From Paraphysomonas bandaiensis (taxonomy: Eukaryota > Protista > Chrysophyceae), in contig CBFFRP010000397.1 of the NCBI GenBank assembly GCA_965644295.1, positions 136,617 through 200,616 on the forward strand: DNA of 64,000 nt, read 5' to 3'. The notes beneath the pieces are model-generated. The model was not told the DNA's origin and did no database searches. It was given only the letters and a program-made list of their open reading frames with translations. Positions 1,250-64,000 of this stretch are shown one piece after another; position 1 is the first letter of the stretch; each line of letters opens with the position of its first letter. The translations under genes and the position numbers were made by a program.

Positions 1250-3109
1250 ATGGGAATCTGTTTCGGATCAATTGCAAGATCAATTTCAGAAATGTGTATG
1301 AGTCAACCTGAAAAATACTTTCAAACTACATATAGAAATCATCAGGCAGAGTTTAATGCATTACGAATGTATGAAAAAGAAATAAGAGAATTACTAGATG
1401 TGTTCAATAGTATTGACACGGAATTGTGTGGGTGGATTAAAATTAGTGCACTGTTCAATTTCGTGGGTATTGAGGAAAACAACTTTTCTCGAAGCGTTTT
1501 CAGCATGTATGATATGGAGAATACTGCACACTTGTGCTTTAGAGATTTTGTTGTGATCCTGTGGAATATTTGCACTTTGCCACCAGTTCCACTAGGTAAG
1601 TAACTATAATATGAAGTATTTCTTATAAGTGTCGCCTATATAGTGGAGTATGTGTTTAGTATGTACGATGCCGACGGTAGTAGAGATATTGATATTGACG
1701 AGGCAAGAGAGATGTGTAGAGATCTGTATGGTGATGAAGGTAGTATGTATGGGGAAGGTGCAAGGTATTCATATTCAAGTTTTTCTTATGGAACATTGAT
1801 CATTTTGAATACTGTACAGAGTGTTTCGTGACCTTGAAGTTTTGACTAGGAAAACGGTGGATTTGGAAATGTTTCAACACTTTATTAAAATGAACGATTC
1901 TATGATGAGAACTCCTAAAGAATTACAGTACCTCCTGCGTTGCCGACTTTTGGGTATGGACTTTTGGATACGTACGGGAAAGAAAAGAGTTGAGGCGTTT
2001 GGTCCTAAGCTATATATAAGTCCTGAACTAGTGTTCGAAAGATACAAGGCTTCAAGATACATACCTCAGATGCCTGCCCATGTGATCCTGAAGAAACAAA
2101 AGGAGAAGAGACGACTGGTAGATGACCAAAAGCAGGAAGTGATGCACATTTCACCACCAGAAAAAGGAAGCAAGGCGTGGAAAGAGATGAAGCTGTCGAA
2201 GAACAATCCTAATCAAATGTAAGCTTTCCCAATGACTCTGTACTGGATATGCCACTAGATCGATATTACTACTTCTTCTCTTAAAGAAAGATCTGTCATT
2301 TGCATTGTTGTTTTCATTCTTTACTTGCACACTAATGGTATGTTTTGTCTCGCAGTGGGCGAGGTCTGGATGGCATTACTATAGATCGGTAAGGCCTCTA
2401 TTTTGTTATTCTGTGGTATGTCCGACTTTGTTCAGGTCTGCAATGGAATTTCGGCGACAAGTAACTGAACAAGAAGTAGAAACTCCAGATACCGCACCCA
2501 AGAAAAAACGGAGTGCCCCAGGAAAAATGAATTCAAGGATCATTGAACAAAAGAGCTCATTTGCTGAACCATCTGAAACTTTGAATCGCTCTCTGAGCAA
2601 ATCATTAAGTAAATCTCAGAGTATATCGCTGAGTAAATCACCATCGAATGCAAGTATCAAGTCAAAGTCTCCGTGAGTGGAATAGCAGTATGCCATTCTT
2701 AGTGGTGACGATTATATTGTAGGGCTTTGTCATCAGAGTCGAGATCATATAGCAGAACACTAAGCAAATCACATAGTCAGCAGCAAGAGGTAACACCGAG
2801 CAAATCACCATCGAATGCAAGTATCAAGTCAAAGTCTCCGTGAGTGGAATAACAGTATGCCATTCCTAGTGGTGACGATTATATTGTAGGGCTTTGTCAT
2901 CAGAGTCGAGATCATATAGCAGAACACTAAGCAAATCACATAGCCAGCAGCAAGAGGTAACACCAAGCAAATCACCATCGAATGCAAGTATCAAGTCAAA
3001 ATCACCGTGAGTATTTTATTCAAAAGTTTCGTATTTTTAGCTCACAGCGTTGCTGTGCAGGGCATTATCTGACTCGGGAAAAAAGAAAGTCGTGGTGCCT
3101 GTTATTTAA
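1250..3109 (+). CDS. EF-hand Ca2+-binding protein (calcineurin-B/NCS-like) with Ser/Lys-rich tail; multi-exon
   Basis: MGIC N-terminus (possible myristoylation/palmitoylation); EF loops DMENTAHLCFRDF and DADGSRDIDIDEA; GT-AG introns join ORFs 1250, 1643, 1821 and 2305; last exon 3061-3109 ends VVVPVI*; middle exon boundaries uncertain. Confidence 0.7.
2635..3012 (+). repeat. 167-bp tandem repeat (50-nt intron + 117-nt exon), about 2.3 copies
   Basis: CCATCGAATGCAAGTATCAAGTCAAA recurs at 2641, 2808 and 2975. Confidence 0.95.
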
Positions 3110-4797
3110 TTGAAATAGCATATATCCAGACCTTGTGTGTTCATATCCTTAACCTATGTACTAATTGTTAATAGAAGTGGAGTTTCGATATCTTTCTCGT
3201 GCCCTTAACATTTCATGTTCTCAAAATGATTGTTTCTTCGTTCCGTCGTCTAGTGTTCTCTGAAAACACCTGGCGTCTACCTGGGTTTTGCGAAACGAGA
3301 ATAGTACCTTTAGTTATGATCTACACGTTCGTTTATAGTAAAGACTTTCATGTTTAAGAGCTTAAGTTATAAAATTAAATCATGCATGCCAACTGCAAAG
3401 CACATATATTGGACTGAAACTTGTAGACCTCTGTATTGCTTTTGGTAGCGCGTTGTCAAAATTCCTCGAAACAAAACTTGAACGGTACATGTATCTTTCT
3501 ACTGATATCTATCTCTTCTACAACTCTACGAATACTGCATGTACCCTGTACTACAAATCAGAATATATCGAGTAGTCTACCGGCTAGAACAAAATAGCAA
3601 TTCAAGCTATATTTATTCTCAAGCCAGTTCACAATATATTGATATATTGCAACAATACAATATATTCTACTAATACCGTATATCGTAGCTACTTCACACT
3701 TCACACCAAAAGTTTCTTAACTATATATATGTTACACAAGACGTAATCAGGTCATAGTGGCATTGATTAACGATTTACGCAGGCAACTACGGGTGTAGCA
3801 AACACTTATAGTCATTAACCACTTCTATTAAACAGCCTGGTACATGGATATATTACATAGAGTGGCACATTCGTGTCCCACACTAATGAAAATACGAAAC
3901 TATATGAGCTATTAGCACATCCTCAACAAAAAACATAAACTTGACCAGCAGCAGACACTTAATAGTAATAACAGCTATTAATAATAGTCTCATTACTATC
4001 ACTTAATTATAAAGATATACAGTGATCTGTATTGTCAACTGTATCCTCACATCACCCCTATATATACATACATATACATATATATACAGGCATGTGTCTG
4101 ATTACTAGACCCATTCCATCGTTTTCATTCGACAGCAAGTGTCGTTACTACAGCGCATCTTACTGGACATCTACTTGTTGATTACTTCCAGAGTACTCCC
4201 AGTCCTCTATACTATATACATATTCATATACATCCACTATAGGCTTCATCAGTTCTATATATCCTCCAATAGGACCGCAACAATCAATACAATCCCATGA
4301 TCTCGATGTGTCTATACATCTATACACTATATCTAGGTTGGTGATTGGACAACCACGTTTTTTTCGCGTTTTTTCAACACATGTCATGGACATACAGCAC
4401 ACGAGATATGGGAAAATTGTGTATCTAGACCTTATTTTTATACCTAAATATAGAAGACCACTTAAATACCTGGAATTTTATACTCCTGAAAATATCGAAA
4501 TCCAGTGGACGTAGACCTCAAGTAGCCCGCCTTTGTCTTGTTGTTCCATAGAATCCCTATGAGGGAAATGATAGGGAAAAGTTGGTTTGTCCCAATAAAT
4601 CCAGTACTGGAGGTGACGATGTGCATTCCTGATATAGATGGATGTACAGTAGAACCCTCATATATGCAGTGGATTTCATTGCATTCAATGCACTCATACC
4701 CCCCCATATACCCTCATCATACTTACTTCATATTCTTATAACTAATGAATCCATTCAGATAAGAGTGTAACATATACATATACATACATAAAGGACG

Positions 4798-20796: not shown

Positions 20797-20916
20797 AACG
20801 GACAGTACCCGGACTTCGCACGTGGTCACCCACCGTACTACTAACCGGGCCAGATGCAACTTAACTTCCGCGAGCGGAACGAGAGCGGGTGCGGTTTGCA
20901 TTGTATGACCGTCCAT
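20797..20916 (-). rRNA. 5S: 5S rRNA
   Basis: 120 nt; helix I ATGGACGG/CTGTCCGT, GGTCATAC, box A-like GAAGTTAAG, TTAGTAGTAC, box C-like GGTGGGTGACC, oligo-T terminator. Confidence 0.95.
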
Positions 20917-27804: not shown

Positions 27805-27924
27805 ATGGACGGTCATACAATGCAAACCGCACCCGCTCTCGTTCCGCTCGCGGAAGTTAAGTTGCATCTGGCCCGGTTAGTAGTACGGTGGGTGACCACG
27901 TGCGAAGTCCGGGTACTGTCCGTT
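27805..27924 (+). rRNA. 5S: 5S rRNA (second copy)
   Basis: Reverse complement of 20797-20916, no differences noticed; TTTTT terminator. Confidence 0.95.
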
Positions 27925-42639: not shown

Positions 42640-43414
42640 AGCTACTATGCCTTCAACACTGCCAGAAATTTAATATACCGCAACTTTTTATCACAATACT
42701 ACTTCAGATTGCGATTAGTTATGCACTTGTTTCCAATGCACCTTTCTGTCCAATGTAAGTATAGTTTTCGTCTCAATCTATATCCGTTTTCAAACCAAAA
42801 TCTGGTGACTTCTTGAATTGAACATTACGTTGAAAGAATTCAAATTAGCCAATCATGTATCTATATGATACAATGATATGTTGTGATTGGATGATTTTAT
42901 TGGAATGTCTTTCGAATATGAAAAATTATTTAGCCCGCACCGCAGGTGCGGGATCCCGCACCCTTGTTTTTACACAAAGGCCGCACAGCAAGTGCGCCCA
43001 TCGAGTGATCCAATCAGCAGAGTGCATCATAGCATAGTGCATCATATCACATGCATCGAGTATATGTATATAGTAATATGACGAGGCAGCCATATGCAGC
43101 AGATACACGTTAATGAGTGCTTGAATGATAGGTGATAACATGTTGCTACCATCTTATTTCATGAAACTGTGAGATGAGATATGCAGTTACTGGACGAGGT
43201 TTATAAGGCTGTATGGAGAGGAACTGTGAAGGGCTGTATATTATGGTATGAAGTGATTTGATATGGATATCAATGATTGAATTCCAGGTGGGAGCATCAT
43301 GCTCCCATCATCCTATTTAAAGTGTCAGGTATGTAGAGAGATGAGAAGTGGTACATTTGAAGGAATAGAAGGCTGTATATCATGCATGCACTATGTTGTG
43401 TGATGGTATATGAT

Positions 43415-44348
43415 ATGCTGAATGTTGTCATGGTTTATTATGCTGTTGTAGGCGCAATGACGTTTATACTTACCGGTGCAAGAGGGATGCCTAAGCGACA
43501 CAAGCGCCCGGCTGCCCCTGTACCATCTTGCAGTGAATATGTGTCATGTTGTGTAAGGGTATGCAGTATGGCTGTATGTGATAAGAATTCTGAACGGTGT
43601 GGAATAATAAAATGCTGAAGGCTGTGATGGTTTATTATGCTGTTGTAGGCGCAATGACGTTTATACTTACCGGTGCAAGAGGGATGCCTAAGCGACACAA
43701 GCGCCCGGCTGCCCCTGTTCCATCTTGCAGTGAATATGTGTCATGTTGTGTAAGGGTATGCAGTATGGCTGTATGTGATAAGAATTCTGAACGGTGTGGA
43801 ATAATAAAATGCTGAACGCTGTGATGGTTGATTATACTGTTGTATGCTCTGTAAATAATGATACGATGTATTCCAATTACTAATGAATCATTAATTATAA
43901 GGGTACAGTATAAAAAGTTGATGGAGTGGTTATAAATGAATACATATAGGCATTCTACAGATTACTAACATCAGACTGTGTCGAATAATAAAATGCTGCA
44001 CGCTGTAATGGTTGATTATACTGTTGTATGCTCTGTAAATAATGATACGATGTATTCCAATTACTAATGAATCATTAATTATAAGGGTACATTATAAAAA
44101 GTTGATGGAGTGGTTATAAATGAATACATATAGGCATTCTACAGATTACTAACATCAGACTGTGTCGAATAATAAAATGCTGAACGCTGTAATGGTTGAT
44201 TATACTGTTGTATGCTCTGTAAATAATGATACGATGTATTCCAATTACTAATGAATCATTAATTATAAGGGTACATTATAAAAAGTTGATGGAGTGGTTA
44301 TAAATGAATACATATATTGGCATTCTACAGATTACTAACATCAGACTG
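43415..44348. repeat. Composite tandem array: 2 x 197-bp unit A + 3 x 184-bp unit B sharing a ~55-bp motif
   Basis: ATGCTG(A/C)A.G.TGT.ATGGTT.ATTAT.CTGTTGTA starts at 43415, 43612, 43809, 43993 and 44177. Confidence 0.95.
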
Positions 44349-44425
44349 AAGTTTCCTTTTCTTTGTCCTTGGAATAATGTTACCATCACTGTCCCTTCGT
44401 GCACTCATTGCATCATATATACTGT

Positions 44426-46568
44426 TTATGTATTTCTTAGAGGCTTTTTTTTGGGGTGAAACTTGTCGTAATTTTCCTGACCAAATAAATCAACAATAAC
44501 ACGCAATTCAACCTTTTCAGCTATGCATTTTAAATTACTCTTCCATTCTCTGTACGAAGTAGACTGACTTGCCATACAGGGTTTCGGCTCATCAAGAAAA
44601 CGTTTCTCGTCATCGTACAATAGGCCGAGTCCTTTAGTCAATACTCGATTTAGTTTTTTCTGTTTGTTGACGTTGTCTACCATAGGGTATCTCTTTCCTA
44701 CAATTTCATGTAATTCATAATCAAAATAGTCAATAATAACTGTTGATAAGCATAATTTTTCGAGAGTTTTATATTGAATGAAGGATATATGGGGCATGCG
44801 CTGCATGTTAACTCTCATGTATTGAAAAACATTTGTCGTAGTAGTGGATGGACCTTTGGAAGGTCCTTCAGTAATCGGAGGCAAGACTGTAGGCGATGTA
44901 GGTATCCGTGATACAGTCTCTGAAGTTGGTATAGTGGTATCCGTTGGAATATTTTTCAAGCCTTCTAGAATATCAGCCACAGCAGTGTCTAATTTCTTGT
45001 GCAGATCAGCTATTGCAATAGTTTGGGTGTCACACTTTCTATGAAGCTGTTGTATTTGGTCTCGAAGAATGCGATTCTCCTGGTAAATTTCGTCTACATT
45101 TCTTGTGTCTACAAAATTAAGGCGAAGCCATTCCTCCTCAATCGCAGCACTCCATTGCATTATGTCATTCCAAGTGAAATGGTGGCGCATCATGTTGTGC
45201 TTGAATTTACAAACCACTGCATGTTGTGCCGTGTATTTAGAAACAAATGATGGTAACCTCATAAGGAATGTAGCAAACACAGAGAGTTTAAATTGAAATA
45301 GACAGCCATCAACCCCAAATTCTGGGTAAGTGAGTGGATAACATGTTTCGATTAACGCCATCACTTGTTCTCGGTTTCCATTGTTGATAAATACACACTC
45401 GGGTGGATATATCTTATTCCTGGGATTAGAGTAGCCACTTAAAATTTTTCCACCCACAGCAATAGTGACATCTAGTCCCATGATATACTCAAAAATGCTG
45501 CACTCTCCGGAGAAGTCCCATCCTCCACGCATAATCGCATGGAAGATGCCGCCTGACTGACTACTGGCTATGTCAGTTGCAGCCCCGACTCTAAGACCCT
45601 TGCCTGTTGTTTCCTTTGTAACTCCAGGTACCTTCCCGATCATTTGTTTTAGTAGCTTAGAAACAAATTGACTAGCGCTTGATGTAGTCAATGCTAGATC
45701 TGGAAAGACGAAGTCACCGTTGAGATCTGCTGCAGTACAGGACATCCAGTACATTGAATAAGCGAAGAAAACACAAGTCTCTAGACAAGAGTAGTCGGGA
45801 AAAAAGTTCATTGTTTTGATAGAAGCCACCTTCAATTCTGTCCAATCAAACGTTAAGTATCCATCGCAGTGCCACATTGCATTATTATACGAAGCAAACA
45901 TTGCTTCAGACACCCGACCAACAGCAGCAAACGTGAAAACCAAATAGAGATTGTACAATGAATACTTCTTCACTTCTAAATAAAGTTTATTAGCATACAG
46001 TAAATCATAGATATGTGAAGTATGTCCACTTACCGGAGAAATCAGATGCCCGATGTATAATGTATTCACCTATGCGCTTCATTAGTTCTTTCCCCACTGG
46101 ACTTGTTTTCTCTGATATACGCACTCCTTGTGCGATACACCGCTTGATAATATGCTTTGATACTGCCGCTCTCACATCTTTGTACCACAGCTCATTGGAG
46201 CTGCTTAATAACTCATTTCTTTTAAATCGCTTCGTCAGCGCAGTCTTCGTGTCTGACAAATACTGCCAAGCAGTACCTAGGGTCAAAGGCTTCTTCGTTG
46301 TTCCATGGACGGCGTGATCGATCAAAAAGCCACCGAAACATTGAAATAGTTCTACATTTATATCACTGTCTATGAGTTCCTTATACCTCTTCTTCCCGTC
46401 GAACCGCATCTCCAAGTACTTCGCAAACTGAGCTAACGCAGAGGAGTTACGATTTTTGGTTTCCCCATCACCGACTTTTCTAATGCCCCCTGTGGTAGTT
46501 GATTCCGTGGTAGTTGATTCCGTGGTAGTTGATTCCGTGGTAGTTGATTCCGTGGTAGTTGATTCCAT
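44426..46568 (-). CDS. Tyrosine recombinase, Crypton-like (~694 aa spliced from the ATG at 46568; one 58-nt intron 45976-46033)
   Basis: Intron GTAAGT..GCTAAT..TTTAG joins the two ORFs in frame (SDFS/EVKKY); motifs AVGRVSE (R), TGKGLRVGAAT (K-x-x-R), MRGGW (W), IFEY (Y); start codon uncertain. Confidence 0.85.
46492..46566 (-). repeat. 15-bp coding tandem repeat x5 (ESTTT)
   Basis: GTGGTAGTTGATTCC x5. Confidence 0.95.
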
Positions 46569-47639
46569 GCTACTATGATATGTTCTCGCTGTTATTATGT
46601 TCTGTATGTATGATACCATGCTGTGATGAGAGAGCTCCTCCTTCAACACCCACCTCCCTGGATCTATTACTCACCAGCAACACCATACATACCACTGGTC
46701 ACTCATCATCACCACTTATATAGTTCCACACCATTATGGTGCGGGCTTGAGTACGGTACCTTCCACATTTTACAGAAAAAATGCATTCAAACAGATTCGG
46801 ACAGATACCAAACTAAACTGAAAATCTATAGGAACAACAAAACTGAAATACTCCTCAATATAAAAATACCGAATATATAGAGAAGAGGACATCATTCCAC
46901 TCCACTTACTATAAATAATATAATTAATAGACACCAACAGAGAAGAGAACCATATGATAGCAGTTATATTCTTCATTGCTTAGATATATTGTATTCTTGT
47001 TTTGATTCCGTTTCAAGCGCATTCTATCTGTCATTTAGAGACTGTACTCCACATATTTTGGGACTGAGTGCATCCTACAGAAGCAACTATATGAATCATA
47101 TACAATCTTAATAATATTATAAGGAAAGCTAACATTACATTAATATGACAGCGATGTTATTGCAACTGAGACAGAAACAACGACAAACGACTTCCTTTTT
47201 ATTTATTGTCGTTCAGATACTCTTTTCGCGCAAATAGTGTTCATTATTTTTATTAAACACAACATTTACATGAAACTGCTTTATAAGTGTGAGCAACACA
47301 TATACTAGTTGTAGGTAGTCTACAATGATATATATGTTGCTATATATCAAGTTTCTTTCAATGATTGGCTAGGGGGGTGATTCAACTACTTACAACACTG
47401 ATGATGTATCCACTGCAAAGTTTATAACTGCTTGCATAAATGTAGATACATTGAAGTTGTTTTCTAGTTATTGTCTTCAAGAGTCGTATATAATACAAAG
47501 ACAGGTGGTGGATGGAGATGAGTCGGCATGATGGTATAAATAATGACATGCGTTCATATTCATTATGTTTATAGTAGCTAGTCCATACTATTATGTTTAT
47601 ATTAGCTAGCAGCAATATGCAATATATATAGTATAATAC

Positions 47640-50728: not shown

Positions 50729-50890
50729 TCCGGTTTACTCAATTACACCTGACACCTCAGGCTTCGAATATTCATAGATCGAAAGCAGCACAACTAGGAG
50801 TGATGACAGTAACTTTTATTGATAATAGATCAGTAAACAATGCATGTACACCACTGCTAGTCTGTGTACAACAGTGTAAAAGGCTGTGAG

Positions 50891-51228
50891 TATGTACGTA
50901 TGTATGTATGTATGTATGTATGTATGTATGTATGTATGTATGTATGTATGTATGTATGTATGTATGTATGTATGTATGTATGTATGTATGTATGTATGTA
51001 TGTATGTATGTATGTATGTATGTATGTATGTATGTATGTATGTATGTATGTATGTATGTATGTATGTATGTATGTATGTATGTATGTATGTATGTATGTA
51101 TGTATGTATGCATGTATGTATGTATGTATGTATGTATGTATGTATGTATGTATGTATGTATGTATGTATGTATGTATGTATGTATGTATGTATGTATGTA
51201 TGTATGTATGTATGTATGTATGTATGTA
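50891..51228. repeat. (TATG)n microsatellite, about 84 units
   Basis: Nearly perfect, with two interruptions. Confidence 0.99.
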
Positions 51229-55788: not shown

Positions 55789-56767
55789 TCATAAAGATAC
55801 TGTAGTCTGCAGTTTGGACTGCCATGCGATTGCTCCAGCACATAAGAATACAATGTAACCGGTAGTTGAACGTCTCGTTAGTATATCACCTGCCCAGTCC
55901 GCATCACTAAATACATGTAAATCAAACTTACTCCCACTGAATTTGATTCCTTTGCTGGTGGTGCCTCTCAAATATTTCAATAAATGAATAGCTGTAAACG
56001 ACACGATGTGTATGTAGGATTACTGCTGTATCTCGATAGTAGTCCGATTGCATAGGCGAGATCTGGTCTTGTGTGGAGTGCGAGATACAGGATTGCTCCA
56101 ATAATACTACGATACGGAAATTTTGAGACCCAGTCCTCCTGTTCTGATGTAAGTTCCCGTTCTGCAGCTAGTAGTTCTTGTGCATTTGATGGCAACGGAG
56201 CTTCCTTATTCTTTCTACTGTTCCCCATGACATATTTGAACTTCTGAATCACTTTCTCCGCATACTTTGATTGATCTAGTTTGAACCAGTCTTCGCCTCT
56301 CGTGATTCGGATATTTAGAAAACTCTGGCACTCTCCCATGTCCCTCATCTCAAACGTTTGGCAGAACTTGTCCTTGACAAAAACAAGGAATTCAAAATCC
56401 ATAGATGCGATTATGATGTCATCTAGATACAGGAGTAATAGCGTAAGTCTGCCTTGGTGCCAACAATAATATAAGCAGGTATCTAACACGCATGATCTAA
56501 ACTGCATTGACTTTATGAATTTATCGATGTGGCGATTCCACTGATGACGCGGTGAGGCTCGTAAACCATATAGTGCTTTGATGAGTTTAAAACACCATCC
56601 GTTGCTGAGCTCCTCATCTGGAGGTGGGTACATGTAGACATCTTCATCTAAATTCGCATAACAAAATGCAGAACTGACATCAAGCTGGTGTACATGCATA
56701 TGAAACATAAAAGCAATTGCAATCACGAGCCTGATAGTTATCCCTTTGACAACCGGTGCAAATGTAG
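55789..56767 (-). mobile_element. Ty1/Copia RT and RNase H fragment (frameshifted, truncated)
   Basis: TFAPVVK, HQLDVSSAF, KALYGL, LLYLDD, PYRSIIGAILYL..TRPDLAYA, FSDADWAGD..RRSTTG. Confidence 0.95.
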
Positions 56768-57145
56768 ATCCCTCAACAAAGTCGGACTCGCACCTTTTCG
56801 TGGTATTCTGGGGGATAAGTACCGGAGAGATTCTCTCTGGGAAACTAACGTGAGCCGCAAACATAGTCAGCAGATATTGTTCTGCCCACTCATAGCCAAA
56901 TGCTTGTGTGGTACAAGGGACACTAATAAGTGTCACTTGTGTAGACGTCTTTGGGCCCTGACGAATAAACAGGCATCCGGGAATGGGCCCACCTCAAGGG
57001 CATCCGGGACAGGGCCCACCAGAAGGGTAACCGGGGTATTGGGCTGCCTGCTGAAGTTAAGCATCCGGGATGTTCACCTTTAGGACTCAAATACCTGAAG
57101 TTAGCATAATATGTCAGTGTGTCTGCCGGACCTGTATCATAAGTT

Positions 57146-57550
57146 TTACGGGGGATGGTTGGGGCTAGATGTATATGAGAGTGTAAGTCGGTGGTGAGAG
57201 TGTAAGTCGGTCAATTGTGTGGCAGTAATGTGGCCGGTCCAGTAGCGCTCAGCTTGGGGTGTGTGTGGATTCCATGCGGCTTTTGCTAGTTTGATTATGG
57301 CGGTGTGAAACCAGGGATTGGGGAGCGTGCGTGTGCAAAGTTTGTCGAACTTGTTGTGGTGTGCTTGGTGAACATCTTCACGTATGTGAGTGAGGTCCGG
57401 GTGTGTGCAGGTGAGAAGCATGTGTGCCATGTTGTCGAATGGGAGTGCACAGTCTGCGCATGCTGAGGCCGTTGTTATGTGATCAGGCCCGGTTTTTCCT
57501 TTGGCTTGGTTTCTGCCCATCGCGTATGATTTGTCCCAAACGTAGGTGTA
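57146..57550 (-). mobile_element. Non-LTR retrotransposon ORF2 C-terminal zinc-knuckle fragment
   Basis: CADCALPFDNMAHMLLTCTHPDLTHIR (C-x2-C...H-x4-C...R) and YWTG. Confidence 0.65.
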
Positions 57551-57960
57551 TAGTGAAATGGTATATGGGTGAATAGTGAGATAGTGTAGTGATGTATAGT
57601 TAGGTGGTATAGTGGTATACAGTAGATGGTATAGTGGTATAATATAGTGGGATGGTATAGTGATACATAGTAATATGGTATGAGTGTATAGTGTATAGTA
57701 GTGAGATGGTATATGGGTGTGAGATGGTATATGGGTGTATAGTGAGATAGTGTAGTGATGTATAGTTAGGTGGTATATAGTGGTATACAGTAGATGGTAT
57801 AGTGGTATAATATAGTGGGATGGTATAGTGATGCATAGTACTATGGTATGGGTGTATAGTGAGATGGTATATGGGTGTGAGATGGTATGTGGGTGTATTT
57901 TGAGATGGTATAGTGGTGTTTAGTGAGATGGTAAAGTGGTGTACAGTGAGATGGTTATAG
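57545..57960. repeat. G/T/A low-complexity minisatellite with an internal ~165-bp duplication
   Basis: Recurrent GTATAGTGAGATGGTATATGGG-like units. Confidence 0.85.
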
Positions 57961-59568
57961 TTCATACTTGTGAACTGTATGTAATATATATGTGTAGTCG
58001 GTGATTTTTATTGCTGTAAAACTGAAGTAATATGGAAGAAATTAGTAAAAAATATTATAAATAATACTTTTCATACTGTTATTATCTTCATAGTTACTTA
58101 TTGTGCATAGTTATACCCTTTTCCAACCATCATCAAAAATTTCACCAGGTTTTACATCAAAAGCCAGGTTTTGGTATTACCTCGACTTCTTAAGAACTCA
58201 AAACACCTGAAGTCAGCAGATGTCAGGTATATCAACATTCTGCTTGCTCCCTGCGTTTGCTTTGAGTGATTGATGCTGAGTATGAGTTCACATTATTCGG
58301 TATCTGTGTGGCCAATGACCGAGGTAATGCGTCAAACTTTCCTCATGGATGCATGGCAATGGCAATGATGTGATTAGACCTGTCATGTCTTCTCACACGT
58401 CTACTGCCTAGTCTTGGTTTCTCCTGACCCAGGTCATTGAGATTATATCAAGGCTCTGGCACTGTTCTCCAAGCAGTGTCAGGTACATTTGTGGTGCTTT
58501 TATGTTATTCTTGCTTAGTAGGTTTTCATCCGAGCGGGGAAGGTGCACGGTTTCCTACTAGTGTAAGTCACTCGGGAGAAGAGTGCAAGGTGGATGCATG
58601 TGCTGGACGAGTGCACACAATGGAGGGAAGACATTGGAGTCAGCTTGAATTTGTAACAGATTTTGGTAGATGTCTGTTTCATGCGTCAGTGTGCAAAATT
58701 GCACCAGTGAGACCGCTTCGTGACCGTGGGAGGACCCGGCGCTATAGAGCTACTTTATTCTCCCTTCCAGACTACCTGCTGCTGTGAACACCACCTTGAA
58801 GAGGGCCCTAAAGATCTGCCGCATATACAGGAGACATATGCCGAAGACACCGACCGCAAGTTGTTTGTGTTAGGACAAGTAGATTAGGCAGGAGCGTATG
58901 ATCCGGCTTAAACACGCAACTCGTCGTATGCCCATGTAGCTAACTAAATCGTGTTGTATAGTTGAGCACTTGTCGGTGCATGCAATAGTAACTAGATGAG
59001 AGTCATGTTATGCATAGTGTCGCGCGAGTTGTTAGGTTGGTCGCGGCAACGCACAAAAGCTTGCGCTTCTTAATAATCAGATTTTCAATGCAAATGTACG
59101 ATCTTACATCGTCACTGTCTTGTGCAATCCAATATATTTCAGATTCAGTACTACAATAGCTATCATATCATTGGTTCTCATAATACGGTTAGCTACTACT
59201 GTATTATTTGAGTAAAGGTTATAATTCAAAAATTCAAATATCTTAGAAACTACGGCTTTTAATTGCTCACAAACAGCAGAACTCAACATTACAGTTATAG
59301 CTATACTATTTTTGACTACGTATTACAGTTTCGCGCATCGTATTTAACGTATTCTACAGTTCCATCCTTTAGAGAAGCATACATATTCCAATATTTTGAG
59401 TTAGTTTACAGTTACCATTATTATCCCTTATGTAGATACGTTTGATTTGAATAAATACTATGATTTCTCATTATGAGGAATGAGTAAAAATCTATCTAGT
59501 CAAATAATTACACAAAGAAAGCGCAACACAAGCCTTCACAGCTAAATGTACCTCAGAAATAATACCTC

Positions 59569-60700
59569 TTAAATTGTGTATGTTGAAACTAGTTCACCAA
59601 CTGCGAATGTTGGTGACGAACGACAAACAATCTGATTCTGGGTCTGATACTTGTTCTTCAGCCTCAGAATGCTTTCTGTTAAACAGGTTGCATTGATACG
59701 CTCCTGCTCCTCCCTCTTCCTAGCAGCAGCATTCTTCCTGTTGACCTCACGTCGTGCTTTACTCGTCAATGTACGGTGCATTGAGCACACCTCTCGGTTC
59801 GTCGGGTAAAGATCCATCTGACTCTTGAATAACTTATCGTGGGAGGGATGCGCTTAATTGCGGCTGAGTTGTGCCCGCTGTATTGAACGTGAGTGGGTTG
59901 TGCTCTAACCGTCCATATACCTGGACGGCCACAAGACACTGACTTCTTGTTCCCCGTTCACGTGCTTCAACATGCATTTCTGATACACCTGTTCCACCAA
60001 AAAGTCTAGTTCTGAATGGAACATATACACCACCGCCCTCCAATACATACTGACTATGTATTCATACCCGGGTCTGGAATTATCCCACCACTTGTAGTTA
60101 TAAAATCTTGAGCATTGTCACTCTTGGGGGCTATTACGTCGCACCAATACCTCCACTCGGCTGCTACTTCAGGATTGTCGACTTCGTACGTTGTCTGCAT
60201 GAGCAATGAAAGTGTCTCTAATAAATTTCTTGAACCAGAAACAAAAGGCGCAGGAGCTGAAATCACACCATGGGGTAACCTGGGAAGGGGATCGAATGGA
60301 GGTTCGCCAGGCTGAGGGGTGTGAATCATTTTCACAGATCTGCGGGATTAGAAGCCACATATACTCTCTCCGCCTGTCCATCGTCAACAATTTCTATGTA
60401 ATTGTCACCAGCGTATGCTTTGTATGTAGTTTTGACGCCTAAAGGGTGATCCTCCGAAACAGTGACCTCTTTCGAAAAGCAGGATTGTAGCTGGGTCCAT
60501 TCTTCTTTAAAAGCATGCGCAAAGTGAGGATCCACACAGTTCTTGAAGAATTGTGCAATGTCAGAAGCGCAAATATATCAGTCACCCACACCTTAACCTT
60601 TGAAGACACTGCCTTCTTTATCATCGAAGCAAACTCTGAAGGACTTAAGCAGTACTGGTCTCTGAGGTAGCACCATATAAGAGGTGTAACTTTTCTGTGC
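59569..60700 (-). pseudogene. Disrupted ORF of unknown family (probably transposon-derived)
   Basis: Chain of abutting same-strand ORFs (60439, 60332, 60054, 59834, 59569) separated by stops and frameshifts, with protein-like composition. Confidence 0.45.
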
Positions 60701-61193
60701 CCGCAGATGACTCACAAACCGTGACTCAACTCTGAATGGACCAAGAAAAGATGATCTCTTGTCTAGACTCTACAACCCACCAAAATAGTATCCGCCAGCG
60801 GGCTGCGATACTGTCCAGGGCGCAACGACGGGCGCACTGCCAGAAACACTAACAAACCGTAGGTGCTCTTTAAGAAAAGTAAATTATAAAGTCAGTGACA
60901 AGAATGAGCAAACACCCATCTCGTTCAACGTAGATCAACACTACACTACGATCAACACTTCACACTCGAAAAACAATATTCACGTACTAAAACCAATATT
61001 CACATACGAAAACTTCGACTATCTACGAAATCACGTATTTTGTACTAAAACTTCGAAGTTCTGGACTTCAGTCCAAATCGAATGTGAATCGCCATCAGAA
61101 ACTGAAAAACGTATCTCAGCTACTAAACTAAAAACCTCGAATGTCGTAAACTGAAAAAGGTAAGTCCCAAATACAGTGAATATACCCTGTATA

Positions 61194-64000
61194 TGACAAC
61201 CTCTATATGCTTATGCATATCATATATATACCATATACTGCTCCAGATATATACGATATATACACACTATATACAGCACAGTATTCTATATACAAATACA
61301 CGCAGTGTATACTGCTGCGTGACACTACCCTCTTTTTCCTTCCAACGGATAAGAGATTCCGGAAATTAGGAAAATTCAAAATTAAGAGAGGATATTGGGA
61401 AATCTGGCACAGAAGGCGGAGTCTACCAGAACCATGGTGTCAGGGTTAAAATCTCGTGTAGTTCCATAGTTCTGGACATCATAGGCTGACCATTCAAAAG
61501 TAGAGTTAAAGAGAGAACAATACACATCAATAGTGATCCTTTTGCGGCCCGCCCAACGCTTATAGACACATTGAACTACATAAAGAGTATCATATGCATT
61601 AGGTAATTCTAAAGCGTCATAGAAGTCTGCACCCCACGCTCGAAGATTAACAAAGACAGCGTCTCCAGGTATGACAGTGGATATAACACACTTCTTGAGT
61701 TTAGTCTTCTGTTGCACTGCTTCCTTTGCAGAAAAACGTAAGGGAAACAATTCAGGGACACTGAAAATATATTCATGAAAAGCTTCACTTGTCGCAAGAT
61801 CAGTAGAGTATGGCATCCACAACAACGATTGATCGGAGAAGAGAACTCTGAAATCCATAGTAGTTCTTTTTTCGGGGTCCCCTCTATAAGCCACCACTTT
61901 GTCAAGAGAAAATTGCCTATAGTCAATCATTGCTATGCGAAAAGCCTCCTCCTTGCTACCAAAGAATGGCTTCAACCAGGACATATGTAACGTTACATCA
62001 AACCGCATTACAAAATGAGTACAAATAACATCGGCCTTGTACGTGGATACTACTTCATACGGTCCTTTGAATCGAGGATATAATTTGGACGGCTTATGTT
62101 TCGTTACATCCAGTTTAAACAAAACAAGCTGGCCTGGTTGATATTGAGTCATTTTCTCTGCTGGGGTTTTGGACATACGTTTATTCTGAATTTTCTTCTG
62201 AACTTCACACGCAATTTTCCTGATAGCTTTAAGGTTATCATTGAAATTGGAAATATAAGTCGAAGAAGCAAATTCATCTGAAGAACTGTCAGGGATATGA
62301 AAATACTTTGAATCCATTGTTCCAAACGTAAACTCAAAAGGTGAAAGACCCGTCTCACTTGAAATTTCATCGTTGAGAATGAATTGTATCAACAAATAGC
62401 ATTCTGGGTCACTCCAATTTTCTAATCTTTCGTCATGAACCAATGCACTAAGAAAACGCAATAATTCCCGATTACTTCGTTCCACCATGTTGGACTCATG
62501 TCTATTCACTAACGACATTCTAAAGCGGACTCCAAACCATTTCAGGAGTAACTGAACAACCCTAGCTGTGATATTCGAACCTGGATCCGATACCATCACT
62601 TCAGAAATTCCATATGTGACAAAGTAACTGAACAAAGCACGTGCCACTCCCTCTGCTGAGTAATTACGAGCTGGATATATTCCTACTAGGCGAGATGGTA
62701 ATTGTTTCACCACATGAATACAACAATAACCATTAGCATCTACCGGAGTAACAGTCAATGTATCGAAACCCACAAAATGTCTGCAATTATCAAGATTTAA
62801 TGCTCTTACTCGGCGCTTGCAACGATGTACTCATATCATAACCTAACTTTTGACAAATAGGACATCGATCAATAAAATCTTGGATAATTTCTGTTGTCAA
62901 GGTATGGCCCGGAAATACCTTACTAAGTTTCAACCATGTTCTCTTAGCTCCGTGATGACCCATTCTACCATTGTGTACTAGATCAAAAGCTTCTTTTAGA
63001 GACTTTGGCTGTAAATTCTGACTAGCTAACTCATCCAAGGCTTTGACTAGTTCCTCTGGGAATTCTGAAACACAAGCAAGATCATCTGCCTCCGCTGACA
63101 ACATACCACTCTCATCATACATAACAAAGTTGGTCTTCCGACGACAGACTAGAGATTCTCATGCTCACTCTCGAACCTGAATCCAATATCTAGACGTGAA
63201 TCTTGAAGACGCAGATCACTAACAACATGCAAGAAGCTGCTCTCTCCTGTCCCATTCTTGATAACCAATCCGCGAAACGATTTAGTTTACCTTTGAAATG
63301 TAACAAATCCATATCAAAGTTTTGCATGAACATTCTCATTCGAACTATTCGGTCAACTACTGAAATTTCCATCCACTTTAGATTTGCTTGATCCGTCATA
63401 ATCGTAAAGTGTTTTCCTCTCAAGTAGTACGACAACTTAAAGATAGAATAGAATATACCAAAACATTCCTTGTCTATAGTTGACCATTTGAAAGCAAGAT
63501 CTGAAAATTTTAGAAACCATAGAAAGAAATCAAGTACATTCTCTTGTTGAGATATTGACACACAGGCTCAATACCCACATCATAGATAGCCTTTTTTGTC
63601 GACTGGAAATCTGTAGAACACTTACATGGAAAAGGAAACCTGGAAATTATAAAAAAACATCAAGTTAACTGCAGAACTTCCATGTTGAACTTTGACTCAT
63701 TGATTCCCACATAGTTACTCAGAACAATGTATAACAACCAGTTTTGATACACTCATAGAATCAATTTTCAACTCAGGAGTACATAGCATCTGATAGTTCT
63801 CTGACATTAGAGTTCGAACAACAGACTTTCTATCACATCGCTGACACAGGATCTCACTCATTACCCTGAACTGTTTGAGAAGTGACAACCTCGAAAGAAT
63901 TTTACATTCCAAGAATATAATATAATATCATCAAACTCAAACAACTTATTTTGAATCAAGGAATTCAAAATTGTAGGTACATTTCAAATACCATCACAAT
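61194..64000 (-). mobile_element. Ty3/Gypsy LTR retrotransposon remnant: RNase H, integrase, chromo-like domain, PPT and 3' LTR
   Basis: WSTIDKEC..TDQANL..GKLNRFADWLSR; HHCC motif (HNGRMGHHG..CPICQK); DDE core (SDPGSN, VERSN); GPY; PPT GGAAGGAAAAAGAGGGTAG at 61325-61343 then TGTCACG at 61324; LTR left boundary (61194) tentative. Confidence 0.9.

Follow-up and report, generated by a model that had tools for sequence, protein, structure and literature searches.

A probable Crypton-class transposon in Paraphysomonas bandaiensis, with GAAAA terminal repeats and putative recombinase-binding sites just inside its ends

A 64-kb stretch of DNA from Paraphysomonas bandaiensis (contig CBFFRP010000397.1; hereafter, the window, meaning the whole stretch that was analysed) contains a spliced tyrosine recombinase gene with a cluster of short, GC-rich, oppositely oriented half-sites (dyads) on either side of it. 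This arrangement raises the question of where the mobile element that carries the gene begins and ends, and whether the dyads are the sites at which its recombinase exchanges strands. The original prediction, made from the sequence of the window, took the dyads to be both the termini of a Crypton-like element and its lox-like crossover sites. The data presented here support the first half of that proposal, a mobile element of the Crypton kind with a tyrosine recombinase as its single enzyme and copies in multiple unrelated flanks, and move its ends outwards. With considerable confidence, we take positions 42920–46779 to be one integrated insertion of a Crypton-class DNA transposon, a young element present in multiple copies, which is bounded by direct repeats of the pentamer GAAAA, the presumed crossover sequence. 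It is assigned to the Crypton class because it encodes a recombinase only, has a short terminal direct repeat, lacks terminal inverted repeats (TIRs) and long terminal repeats (LTRs), and is present in multiple copies.

The ends were defined by comparing the window with 16 related contigs from other samples. Five right junctions were available (the window, L001/L002, L003, L004 and a second copy in L134). All of them match up to ...TTTTACAGAAAA, beyond which the flanks are unrelated, the bases that follow the right GAAAA being AATGCA, AATTGA, TATACA, GAACAT and ACTGTG. For the left end, 11 contigs (L134–L144) were recovered by a search with small open reading frames (ORFs) from the left part of the element, and 10 of these reach the end itself. 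Eight of the ten provide five further unrelated left flanks (L134; L135; L136; L139 and L141; L140, L143 and L144), making six with that of the window, and every left flank abuts GAAAAATTATTT, which is followed by AGCCCGCACC. The window copy of this element, here called family A, thus spans 42920–46779 on the minus strand, or 3860 bp when both GAAAA repeats are counted; one unit, as found in a head-to-tail junction, corresponds to 42920–46774, and the second GAAAA to 46775–46779. In other family A copies the length shared at the right junction is 5–6 nt.

These junctions do not fall at the dyads. Copies match the window to 42920 on the left and to ∼46779–46782 on the right before unrelated flanks begin, so that the possibility, raised with the original prediction, that copies might end elsewhere than at the dyads is what was found. 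Likewise, the element had been described as lacking a target-site duplication (TSD), whereas a 5-bp direct repeat, GAAAA, is present at 42920–42924 and 46775–46779. The termini, GAAAAATTATTT... and ...CATTTTACAGAAAA, do not form an inverted pair; the 10-bp inverted repeats occupy subterminal positions, 12 and 32 nt inward from the ends. Other candidates for a terminal repeat were rejected once the left junctions had been seen. TATGG, at 46735–46739, lies inside the spacer of the right dyad and is not a boundary. The ATTATGGT direct repeats (43240 and 46733), which had been named as alternative ends, are not boundaries either, and CTGTAAA/GTGTAAA, considered by analogy with CryptonS-1_PTri, was discarded on the same evidence.

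In two contigs from different assemblies (L138 and L142), the right end is fused to the left end through one GAAAA. The junction reads TTTTACA-GAAAAA-TTATTT or, at greater length, ...CCACATTTTACA-GAAAAA-TTATTTAGCCCGCACC... This head-to-tail arrangement indicates either a circle or a tandem copy, and the contigs fit both. Right-end-to-left-end contigs may point to excision and integration by way of a circle, and not to the inversion or hairpin-type processing that the inverted orientation of the dyads had been thought to permit; the element has no inverted termini. In the scheme that we favour, which draws on the Crypton model (PMC3212892) and on observations in Chlamydomonas (PMC9977147), strands would be exchanged within GAAAA. 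If the two terminal copies of GAAAA recombined with each other, a circle would be released, one GAAAA would stay behind and the target would be restored; the circle junction could subsequently recombine with another GAAAA in A/T-rich DNA. The dyads would serve as accessory or anchoring binding sites during synapse assembly, in a role like that of the end-binding sites of Tn916/Tn1549-type elements.

The evidence for mobility extends beyond the junctions. With at least six unrelated left flanks and at least five unrelated right flanks, the element is multi-copy, and its copies are near-identical; one copy lies in the 64-kb window, and L004 is an older copy with 88% identity. The same 1.2-kb internal deletion, from 45799 to 44600, was found in two independent assemblies (L003, 1027–1060; L126, 760–790), in both of which the intron is kept, and L003/L126 is a non-autonomous DNA derivative of the element. 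TTTTC, the complement of GAAAA, is found at both ends of the deletion, oriented as in the terminal repeats; the deletion may have arisen by action of the recombinase on internal pseudo-sites, or by plain microhomology. Another contig, L134 (1–1492), contains a pair of copies that point the same way and are separated by a 1212-nt interval with kinase-like host sequence, and such a pair could be excised or moved jointly with the host segment. Transcripts read into the element from flanking DNA. Scans of viral contigs with the exact-end pattern and with the protein gave no match.

The recombinase gene lies on the minus strand and comprises two exons that together encode 694 aa, as originally predicted. 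Two sequences from one Joint Genome Institute (JGI) sample, L001 and L002, which encode P0001 and P0006, lack exactly the 58-nt intron and are therefore spliced transcripts. Comparison of the window with L001/L002 over ∼2.6 kb revealed indels only and no substitutions: the number of 15-nt ESTTT repeats, a 9-nt indel, the number of 184-nt repeats in the 3′ untranslated region (UTR), and one homopolymer base. The ESTTT repeat occurs three, five or seven times, depending on the copy. More generally, the numbers of 197-nt, 184-nt and 15-nt ESTTT repeats vary among otherwise identical copies. Without the homopolymer frameshift, the recombinase frame would stop at 44325–44327. The intact recombinase, in the form encoded by the transcripts, has 715–738 aa, a range that is due to the ESTTT repeat number. 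The tail that is lost in the window copy, 39 residues that include a basic PRTKKRK stretch, is conserved in P0076, which is 59% identical over the region. Unless the homopolymer is an assembly error, this frameshift has probably left the window copy defective. The element contains no other ORF of >100 aa and no reverse transcriptase (RT) or capsid ORF, and here too the original prediction was borne out.

Searches of Pfam and of PDB sequences with the protein alone returned no match; no Pfam model covers the window protein, and there is none for the recombinase family. Only P0001 and one Skeletonema protein came up in word-indexed protein searches, for which exon 2 and the family profile served as queries. 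An exhaustive HMMER search of marine meta-omic data clustered at 50% identity retrieved 560 cluster representatives at E ≤ 1e-3, including 215 at E ≤ 1e-10. Among the relatives, a single one is named, a hypothetical protein from the diatom Skeletonema menzelii; no comparable ends were seen at the Skeletonema locus (L127), where the contig begins 590 nt upstream of the gene. Among 33 full-length relatives, residues G215, R216, E219, K244, R324 and Y359 are invariant and W348 is present in 32. The His position of the HxxR motif is variable in relatives (H, K, T or R) and is occupied by K in the window protein, the catalytic residues of which are all intact.

Membership of the tyrosine recombinases is also apparent from profile and structure comparisons. 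One relative reaches the Pfam model Phage_integrase and another Phage_int_SAM_5, and the family profile aligns to the segment of Cre that contains HxxR, W and Y (E 0.08). An AlphaFold model of residues 30–480, computed with 148 sequences, had a predicted local distance difference test score (pLDDT) of 92 and a predicted template-modelling score (pTM) of 0.88. When this model was compared with the PDB by Foldseek, the top 15 matches were Cre (E 1.7e-4, probability 1.0, ∼330 aligned columns covering both domains, template-modelling score 0.57–0.63 on the target), followed by Flp, lambda Int, XerA and Tn1549 Int. As modelled, the element protein is a Cre-fold tyrosine recombinase. No RT, DDE, GCR1_C or C48 domain was detected by Pfam in the window protein or in 43 relatives, and DUF3504, characteristic of CryptonA, was absent from 33 relatives at E ≤ 0.01 and from the window protein at E ≤ 1. 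Among the sequences compared, the C-terminal 180 aa are conserved only in close relatives; a structure model of the C-terminal 183 aa, with a pLDDT of 49, was not used. Weak bZIP matches of the coiled-coil region were rejected as zipper composition, the region being acidic, not basic, in P0001.

If the element ends at GAAAA, what are the dyads? Their sequences, coordinates and orientations, which can be read directly from the window, are as the original prediction gave them. The motif CCCGCACC occurs four times in the window, only at 42934, 42945, 42955 and 46738, as compared with an expectation of 0.39; none of 100 shuffles reached four. None of the four is more than 60 nt from an end of the element (binomial p 9e-7). 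The left end reads AGCCCGCACC (42932–42941), GCA, GGTGCGGGA (42945–42953) and TCCCGCACC (42954–42962), while the right end, on the minus strand, reads AGCCCGCACC (46747–46738), ATAAT and GGTGTGGAA (46732–46724), and GGTGCGGGCT is a perfect 10-bp inverted copy of 42932–42941. TTCCACAYY has four matches in the window, all four within the element. The left cluster is present in all 11 contigs that cover this site, with one A-to-C variant in L142 and L143, and its predicted hairpin has an energy of −10.2 kcal/mol (z −3.0). For the right dyad, the predicted fold is no more stable than that of shuffled sequence (z −0.3). In the joined form, GGTGCGGGCT, 27 nt, GAAAA, 7 nt and AGCCCGCACC follow one another, with further half-sites on both sides. 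The DNA around the dyads had been called very AT-rich; the region has a GC content of 34–41%, like the rest of the window (34–50%), and the surrounding DNA is not extremely AT-rich.

Some other occurrences of such motifs may be recorded here. GGTGTGGAA half-sites are also found in the 197-nt tandem repeats of the 3′ UTR (43596–43604 and 43793–43801), and a perfect palindrome, GGGAGCAT-C-ATGCTCCC, at 43290–43306, is inside the element and unrelated to the CCCGCACC half-sites. A metagenome scan with a degenerate dyad pattern gave 120 chance matches, mostly in non-marine metagenomes, none of them related to the element.

A second, distant family has a comparable layout with different half-sites. 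Proteins P0020 and P0162, ∼28% identical to P0001, are encoded by an intronless 2813-bp unit (family B), which is 99.96% identical at at least three loci with unrelated flanks (L128, L131, L132 and L133; 876–3688 in L128, 4674–7486 in L131 and 284–3096 in L132). Judged from its sequence, family B looks currently active. The direct repeats at its junctions are GAA, GAAA or GAAAAT, with 3–6 nt shared, and its presumed crossover pentamer is the same as that of the window element. After a T run beside one GAAAA stand four alternating half-sites, AGGGACCC-GGCA-GGGTCCCT and GAGGGACC-GAA-GGTCCCTC, and two more GGTCCCTCG half-sites are located 16 and 38 nt before the other GAAAA. The spacers of the family B dyads are 3 and 4 nt. 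The unit contains seven GGGACC/GGTCCC hexamers, of which all but one fall in the outermost 60 nt at either end (p 4e-8). The terminal modules of families A and B look colinear; with respect to these modules, the recombinase gene of one family is on the opposite strand to that of the other. The heptamer TACGGTA is present at 46752–46758 of the window and at 3651–3657 of L128, in both families between two half-sites upstream of GAAAA; anchoring of the A and B ends on this heptamer was not reproduced by MAFFT, and it is only suggestive.

On balance, we favour the view that the dyads are subterminal binding sites for the recombinase, rather than crossover sites, and that they bracket the crossover once the ends have been joined. 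They are attributed to the element's own recombinase because families A and B share the crossover pentamer and have family-specific half-sites at both ends. Tyrosine recombinases cleave 6–8 bp apart, and the dyads are unlikely to be crossover cores because their spacers are only 3–5 nt. The earlier claim that the dyads are recombinase sites is thus retained in part: they are plausible putative binding sites within the element, and not the points of crossover. A more speculative extension, which we regard as possible without leaning towards it, is that the half-site clusters flanking GAAAA constitute a defined multi-site attachment region, in which the half-sites change with the recombinase across sub-families while the pentamer stays constant, and that a recombinase-driven inversion between subterminal inverted half-sites has left its trace in the contrasting gene orientations of families A and B.

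Several observations weigh against this picture. The head-to-tail contigs fit a tandem array as well as they fit a circle, the position of the crossover is resolved only to within GAAAA(A), and an inverted-repeat core immediately beside GAAAA is absent. The termini are GAAAA, and not the TATGG of most CryptonS elements, although the diatom element CryptonS-1_PTri also lacks TATGG. Conservation of the dyads among family A copies carries little weight, the copies being near-identical throughout, and the diverged copy L004 lacks 10 nt (CTCAAGCCCG) that make up most of the outer half of the right dyad. The outer half-site of the right dyad may be dispensable, or L004 may be dead.

That the dyads are after all the termini, and lox/FRT-like crossover sites whose inverted arrangement would lead to inversion or hairpin-type processing, would accord with several features: the dyads are real and element-specific, a perfect 10-bp inverted repeat is present at both ends, the hairpin predicted for the left cluster is stable (z −3.0), and an ancient inversion could explain the opposite gene strands in families A and B. 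We consider it very improbable, nevertheless, because homology between copies continues for 12 nt past the left dyad and for 32–35 nt past the right one before the flanks diverge, because the junctions carry direct GAAAA repeats and head-to-tail junctions exist, and because the inverted arrangement was seen in none of ∼15 contigs. The right dyad, moreover, folds like shuffled sequence (z −0.3), and its 5-nt spacer and the 3-nt spacer of the left dyad are too short for an overlap region; we know of no tyrosine recombinase with an overlap region as short as either. A better case, though still an unlikely one, can be made for a Crypton in which the dyads are cis-regulatory or structural signals, such as promoter or enhancer sequences of the recombinase gene, 3′-end signals, replication signals or sites for host factors. 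In family B, and in family A once its ends are joined, the half-site cluster precedes the recombinase ATG by ∼205–250 nt; GGTGTGGAA half-sites recur in the 3′-UTR repeats, and most of one half-site has been lost in L004. In integrated family A copies, however, the cluster is at the end far from the promoter, and the sites lie 7–27 nt from the crossover; a family-specific half-site at both ends of each element fits an element-encoded factor better than it fits a conserved host factor.

The head-to-tail contigs, which come from two independent samples, could also be accommodated if the element were, in the main, a free episomal circle that integrates now and then, comparable to the 2-micron plasmid of yeast with its Flp recombinase, and the chromosomal copies were by-products; a unit of ∼3.9 kb would suit such an episome, and the internal tandem repeats could serve its maintenance. 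At least six chromosomal junctions as against two junction contigs, the entry of transcripts from flanking DNA, the absence of a replication gene from the element and the lack of any match in scans of viral or episomal contigs make this distinctly unlikely. The only diatom plasmids that we found in the literature, pCf1 and pCf2, carry serine and not tyrosine recombinases (PMC2873285), and they were rejected as relatives for this reason (PMC2873285). Least credible of all, to the point of being negligible, is a domesticated single-copy host recombinase gene, which the original prediction had considered and for which the dyads would be chance palindromes. The gene is indeed present once in the 64-kb window and is transcribed and spliced; in place of a single copy there are many near-identical loci with unrelated flanks, a deletion derivative exists, and the statistics of the half-site motif argue against chance.

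Crypton DNA transposons were reportedly described by Goodwin et al. in 2003. The window element resembles them, and the CryptonS elements of stramenopiles in particular, in having a recombinase as its sole enzyme, an intron-containing gene, a length in the range of 3–5 kb, a 5-bp direct repeat at its termini (4–7 bp in Cryptons), no terminal inverted or long direct repeats, and a non-autonomous derivative. A terminal direct repeat of 5–6 bp and a lack of TIRs characterize CryptonS (Kojima and Jurka, 2011; PMC3212892), which is known from oomycetes and one diatom, CryptonS-1_PTri of Phaeodactylum being 4671 bp long with the terminal repeat CTGTAAG (PMC3212892). The RGxW...Y motif of the window protein also resembles the sequences in Additional file 4 of that study, compared by eye only (PMC3212892). 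What sets the element apart from CryptonS, in addition to its terminal pentamer, is the presence of family-specific GC-rich half-site clusters just inside both ends. Kojima and Jurka reported that they had detected no nucleotide sequences conserved between Cryptons of different species, and in 2011 no cis-acting sites had been defined for Cryptons and no biochemistry had been done (PMC3212892); we found no published description of Crypton binding sites in the literature. The same logic as that of GAAAA applies to CryptonF-1_cRei, for which activity has been seen in mutation-accumulation lines of Chlamydomonas: one of its termini ends in the pentamer CACCG, which matches its target CAYCG, and its clean excision leaves only the target pentamer (PMC9977147). 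CryptonF-1_cRei belongs to another Crypton group and another host, and its activity was observed, whereas the window element is known from sequence.

Outside the Cryptons, Cre–loxP and Flp–FRT offer the closest solved folds over both domains, and share the catalytic R-K-(H/K)xxR-W-Y set. In both lox and FRT, two inverted arms of 13 bp enclose an 8-bp spacer, and strands are exchanged inside it. Here, in contrast, the dyad spacers are 3–5 nt and exchange would occur 7–27 nt outside the dyads, and the window protein is twice as long, with a coiled coil and a C-terminal extension. Integrases of conjugative transposons of the Tn916/Tn1549 type (Y-transposases) excise their elements to a circle, use a short A/T-rich crossover with relaxed target specificity, and have end sites besides the crossover. 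The window element would work in a similar manner, and Tn1549 Int is among its fold matches; the likeness drawn here is one of mechanism, and the Tn916/Tn1549 systems differ in being bacterial, in having an arm-binding N-terminal domain and an Xis protein, and in tolerating heterologous coupling sequences. DIRS and Ngaro retrotransposons are likewise eukaryotic and use a tyrosine recombinase, but encode RT and RNase H and have split or inverted terminal repeats, and there is no RT ORF or domain here. The Starships of fungi, too, are eukaryotic tyrosine-recombinase elements, but they are giant cargo elements with a DUF3435 captain, whereas the present element is 3.9 kb and no DUF3435 was found in it. 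A TIR (DDE) transposon was rejected on the grounds that there are no inverted termini, no TSD of fixed length and no DDE transposase.

The element is, then, an ordinary Crypton-class transposon with unusually clear candidate recombinase-binding sites. The half-site architecture and the junction contigs add useful detail for what is the least understood class of eukaryotic DNA transposons. The material assembled here combines near-identical copies at many sites with transcripts that are spliced, ends that are exactly defined, a junction of head-to-tail type, a derivative with an internal deletion, and a second, distant family. Taken as a whole, it makes both the circle model and the recognition of the ends by the recombinase testable. 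Should the multi-site attachment region prove to be real, it would be the first minimal, reconstitutable Crypton recombination site, and recombinase/site pairs native to eukaryotes, each with its own specificity, would be at hand. With at least 560 clusters in the recombinase family and no Pfam model for it, elements of this type have probably been under-annotated in the genomes of protists. The features of the window copy are collected in Table 1.

Table 1. Features of the family A element in the window, in order of position
Feature	Position	Strand	Remarks
Whole element, family A	42920–46779	−	Homology with 16 related contigs ends here; unrelated flanks beyond
Left terminal direct repeat GAAAA, putative crossover sequence	42920–42924	+	Six unrelated left flanks abut GAAAAATTATTT
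Left subterminal cluster, three CCCGCACC half-sites in alternating orientation	42932–42962		Begins 7 nt inside GAAAA
15-nt tandem repeat, ×2.9	43016–43057		
197-nt tandem repeat, ×2.2	43415–43844		GGTGTGGAA half-site in each full unit
184-nt tandem repeat, ×3, 3′ UTR	43794–44348		Copy number varies between copies
Recombinase exon 2	44426–45975	−	Residues R199 (45914–45916), K227 (45830–45832), K304xxR307 (45590–45601), W331 (45518–45520), Y342 (45485–45487); early end at 44426
Homopolymer of 8	44445–44452	−	9 in L001, L002 and L003; 1-nt frameshift swaps last 39 aa for 5
Intron, 58 nt, GTAAGT...TAG, GT-AG, phase 1	45976–46033	−	Missing from transcripts L001 and L002; retained in DNA contig L003
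Recombinase exon 1	46034–46568	−	Includes ESTTT ×5 coding repeat at 46492–46566
Right subterminal dyad TTCCACACC-ATTAT-GGTGCGGGCT	46724–46747		Ends 27 nt inside GAAAA
Extra variant half-site TTCCACATT	46761–46769	+	5 nt from right GAAAA
Right terminal direct repeat GAAAA	46775–46779	+	Five right junctions: CAGAAAA, then differing bases; target DNA follows

The remainder of the window has the character of eukaryotic nuclear DNA, with 5S rRNA genes, a DNA primase gene, a CstF77-like gene and a Copia element. The two 5S rRNA genes, at 20797–20916 (minus strand) and 27805–27924 (plus strand), have identical Rfam scores and are inverted with respect to each other, ∼7 kb apart. Copia-type RT and integrase ORFs at 55977–62773 on the minus strand probably belong to one LTR retrotransposon, and a G-rich 23/46-nt minisatellite with a GC skew of 0.52 is located within this span, at 57545–57961. 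Other repeats in the window are a 167-nt tandem repeat (×2.3) at 2631–3012 and a (GTAT)85 microsatellite at 50890–51228.

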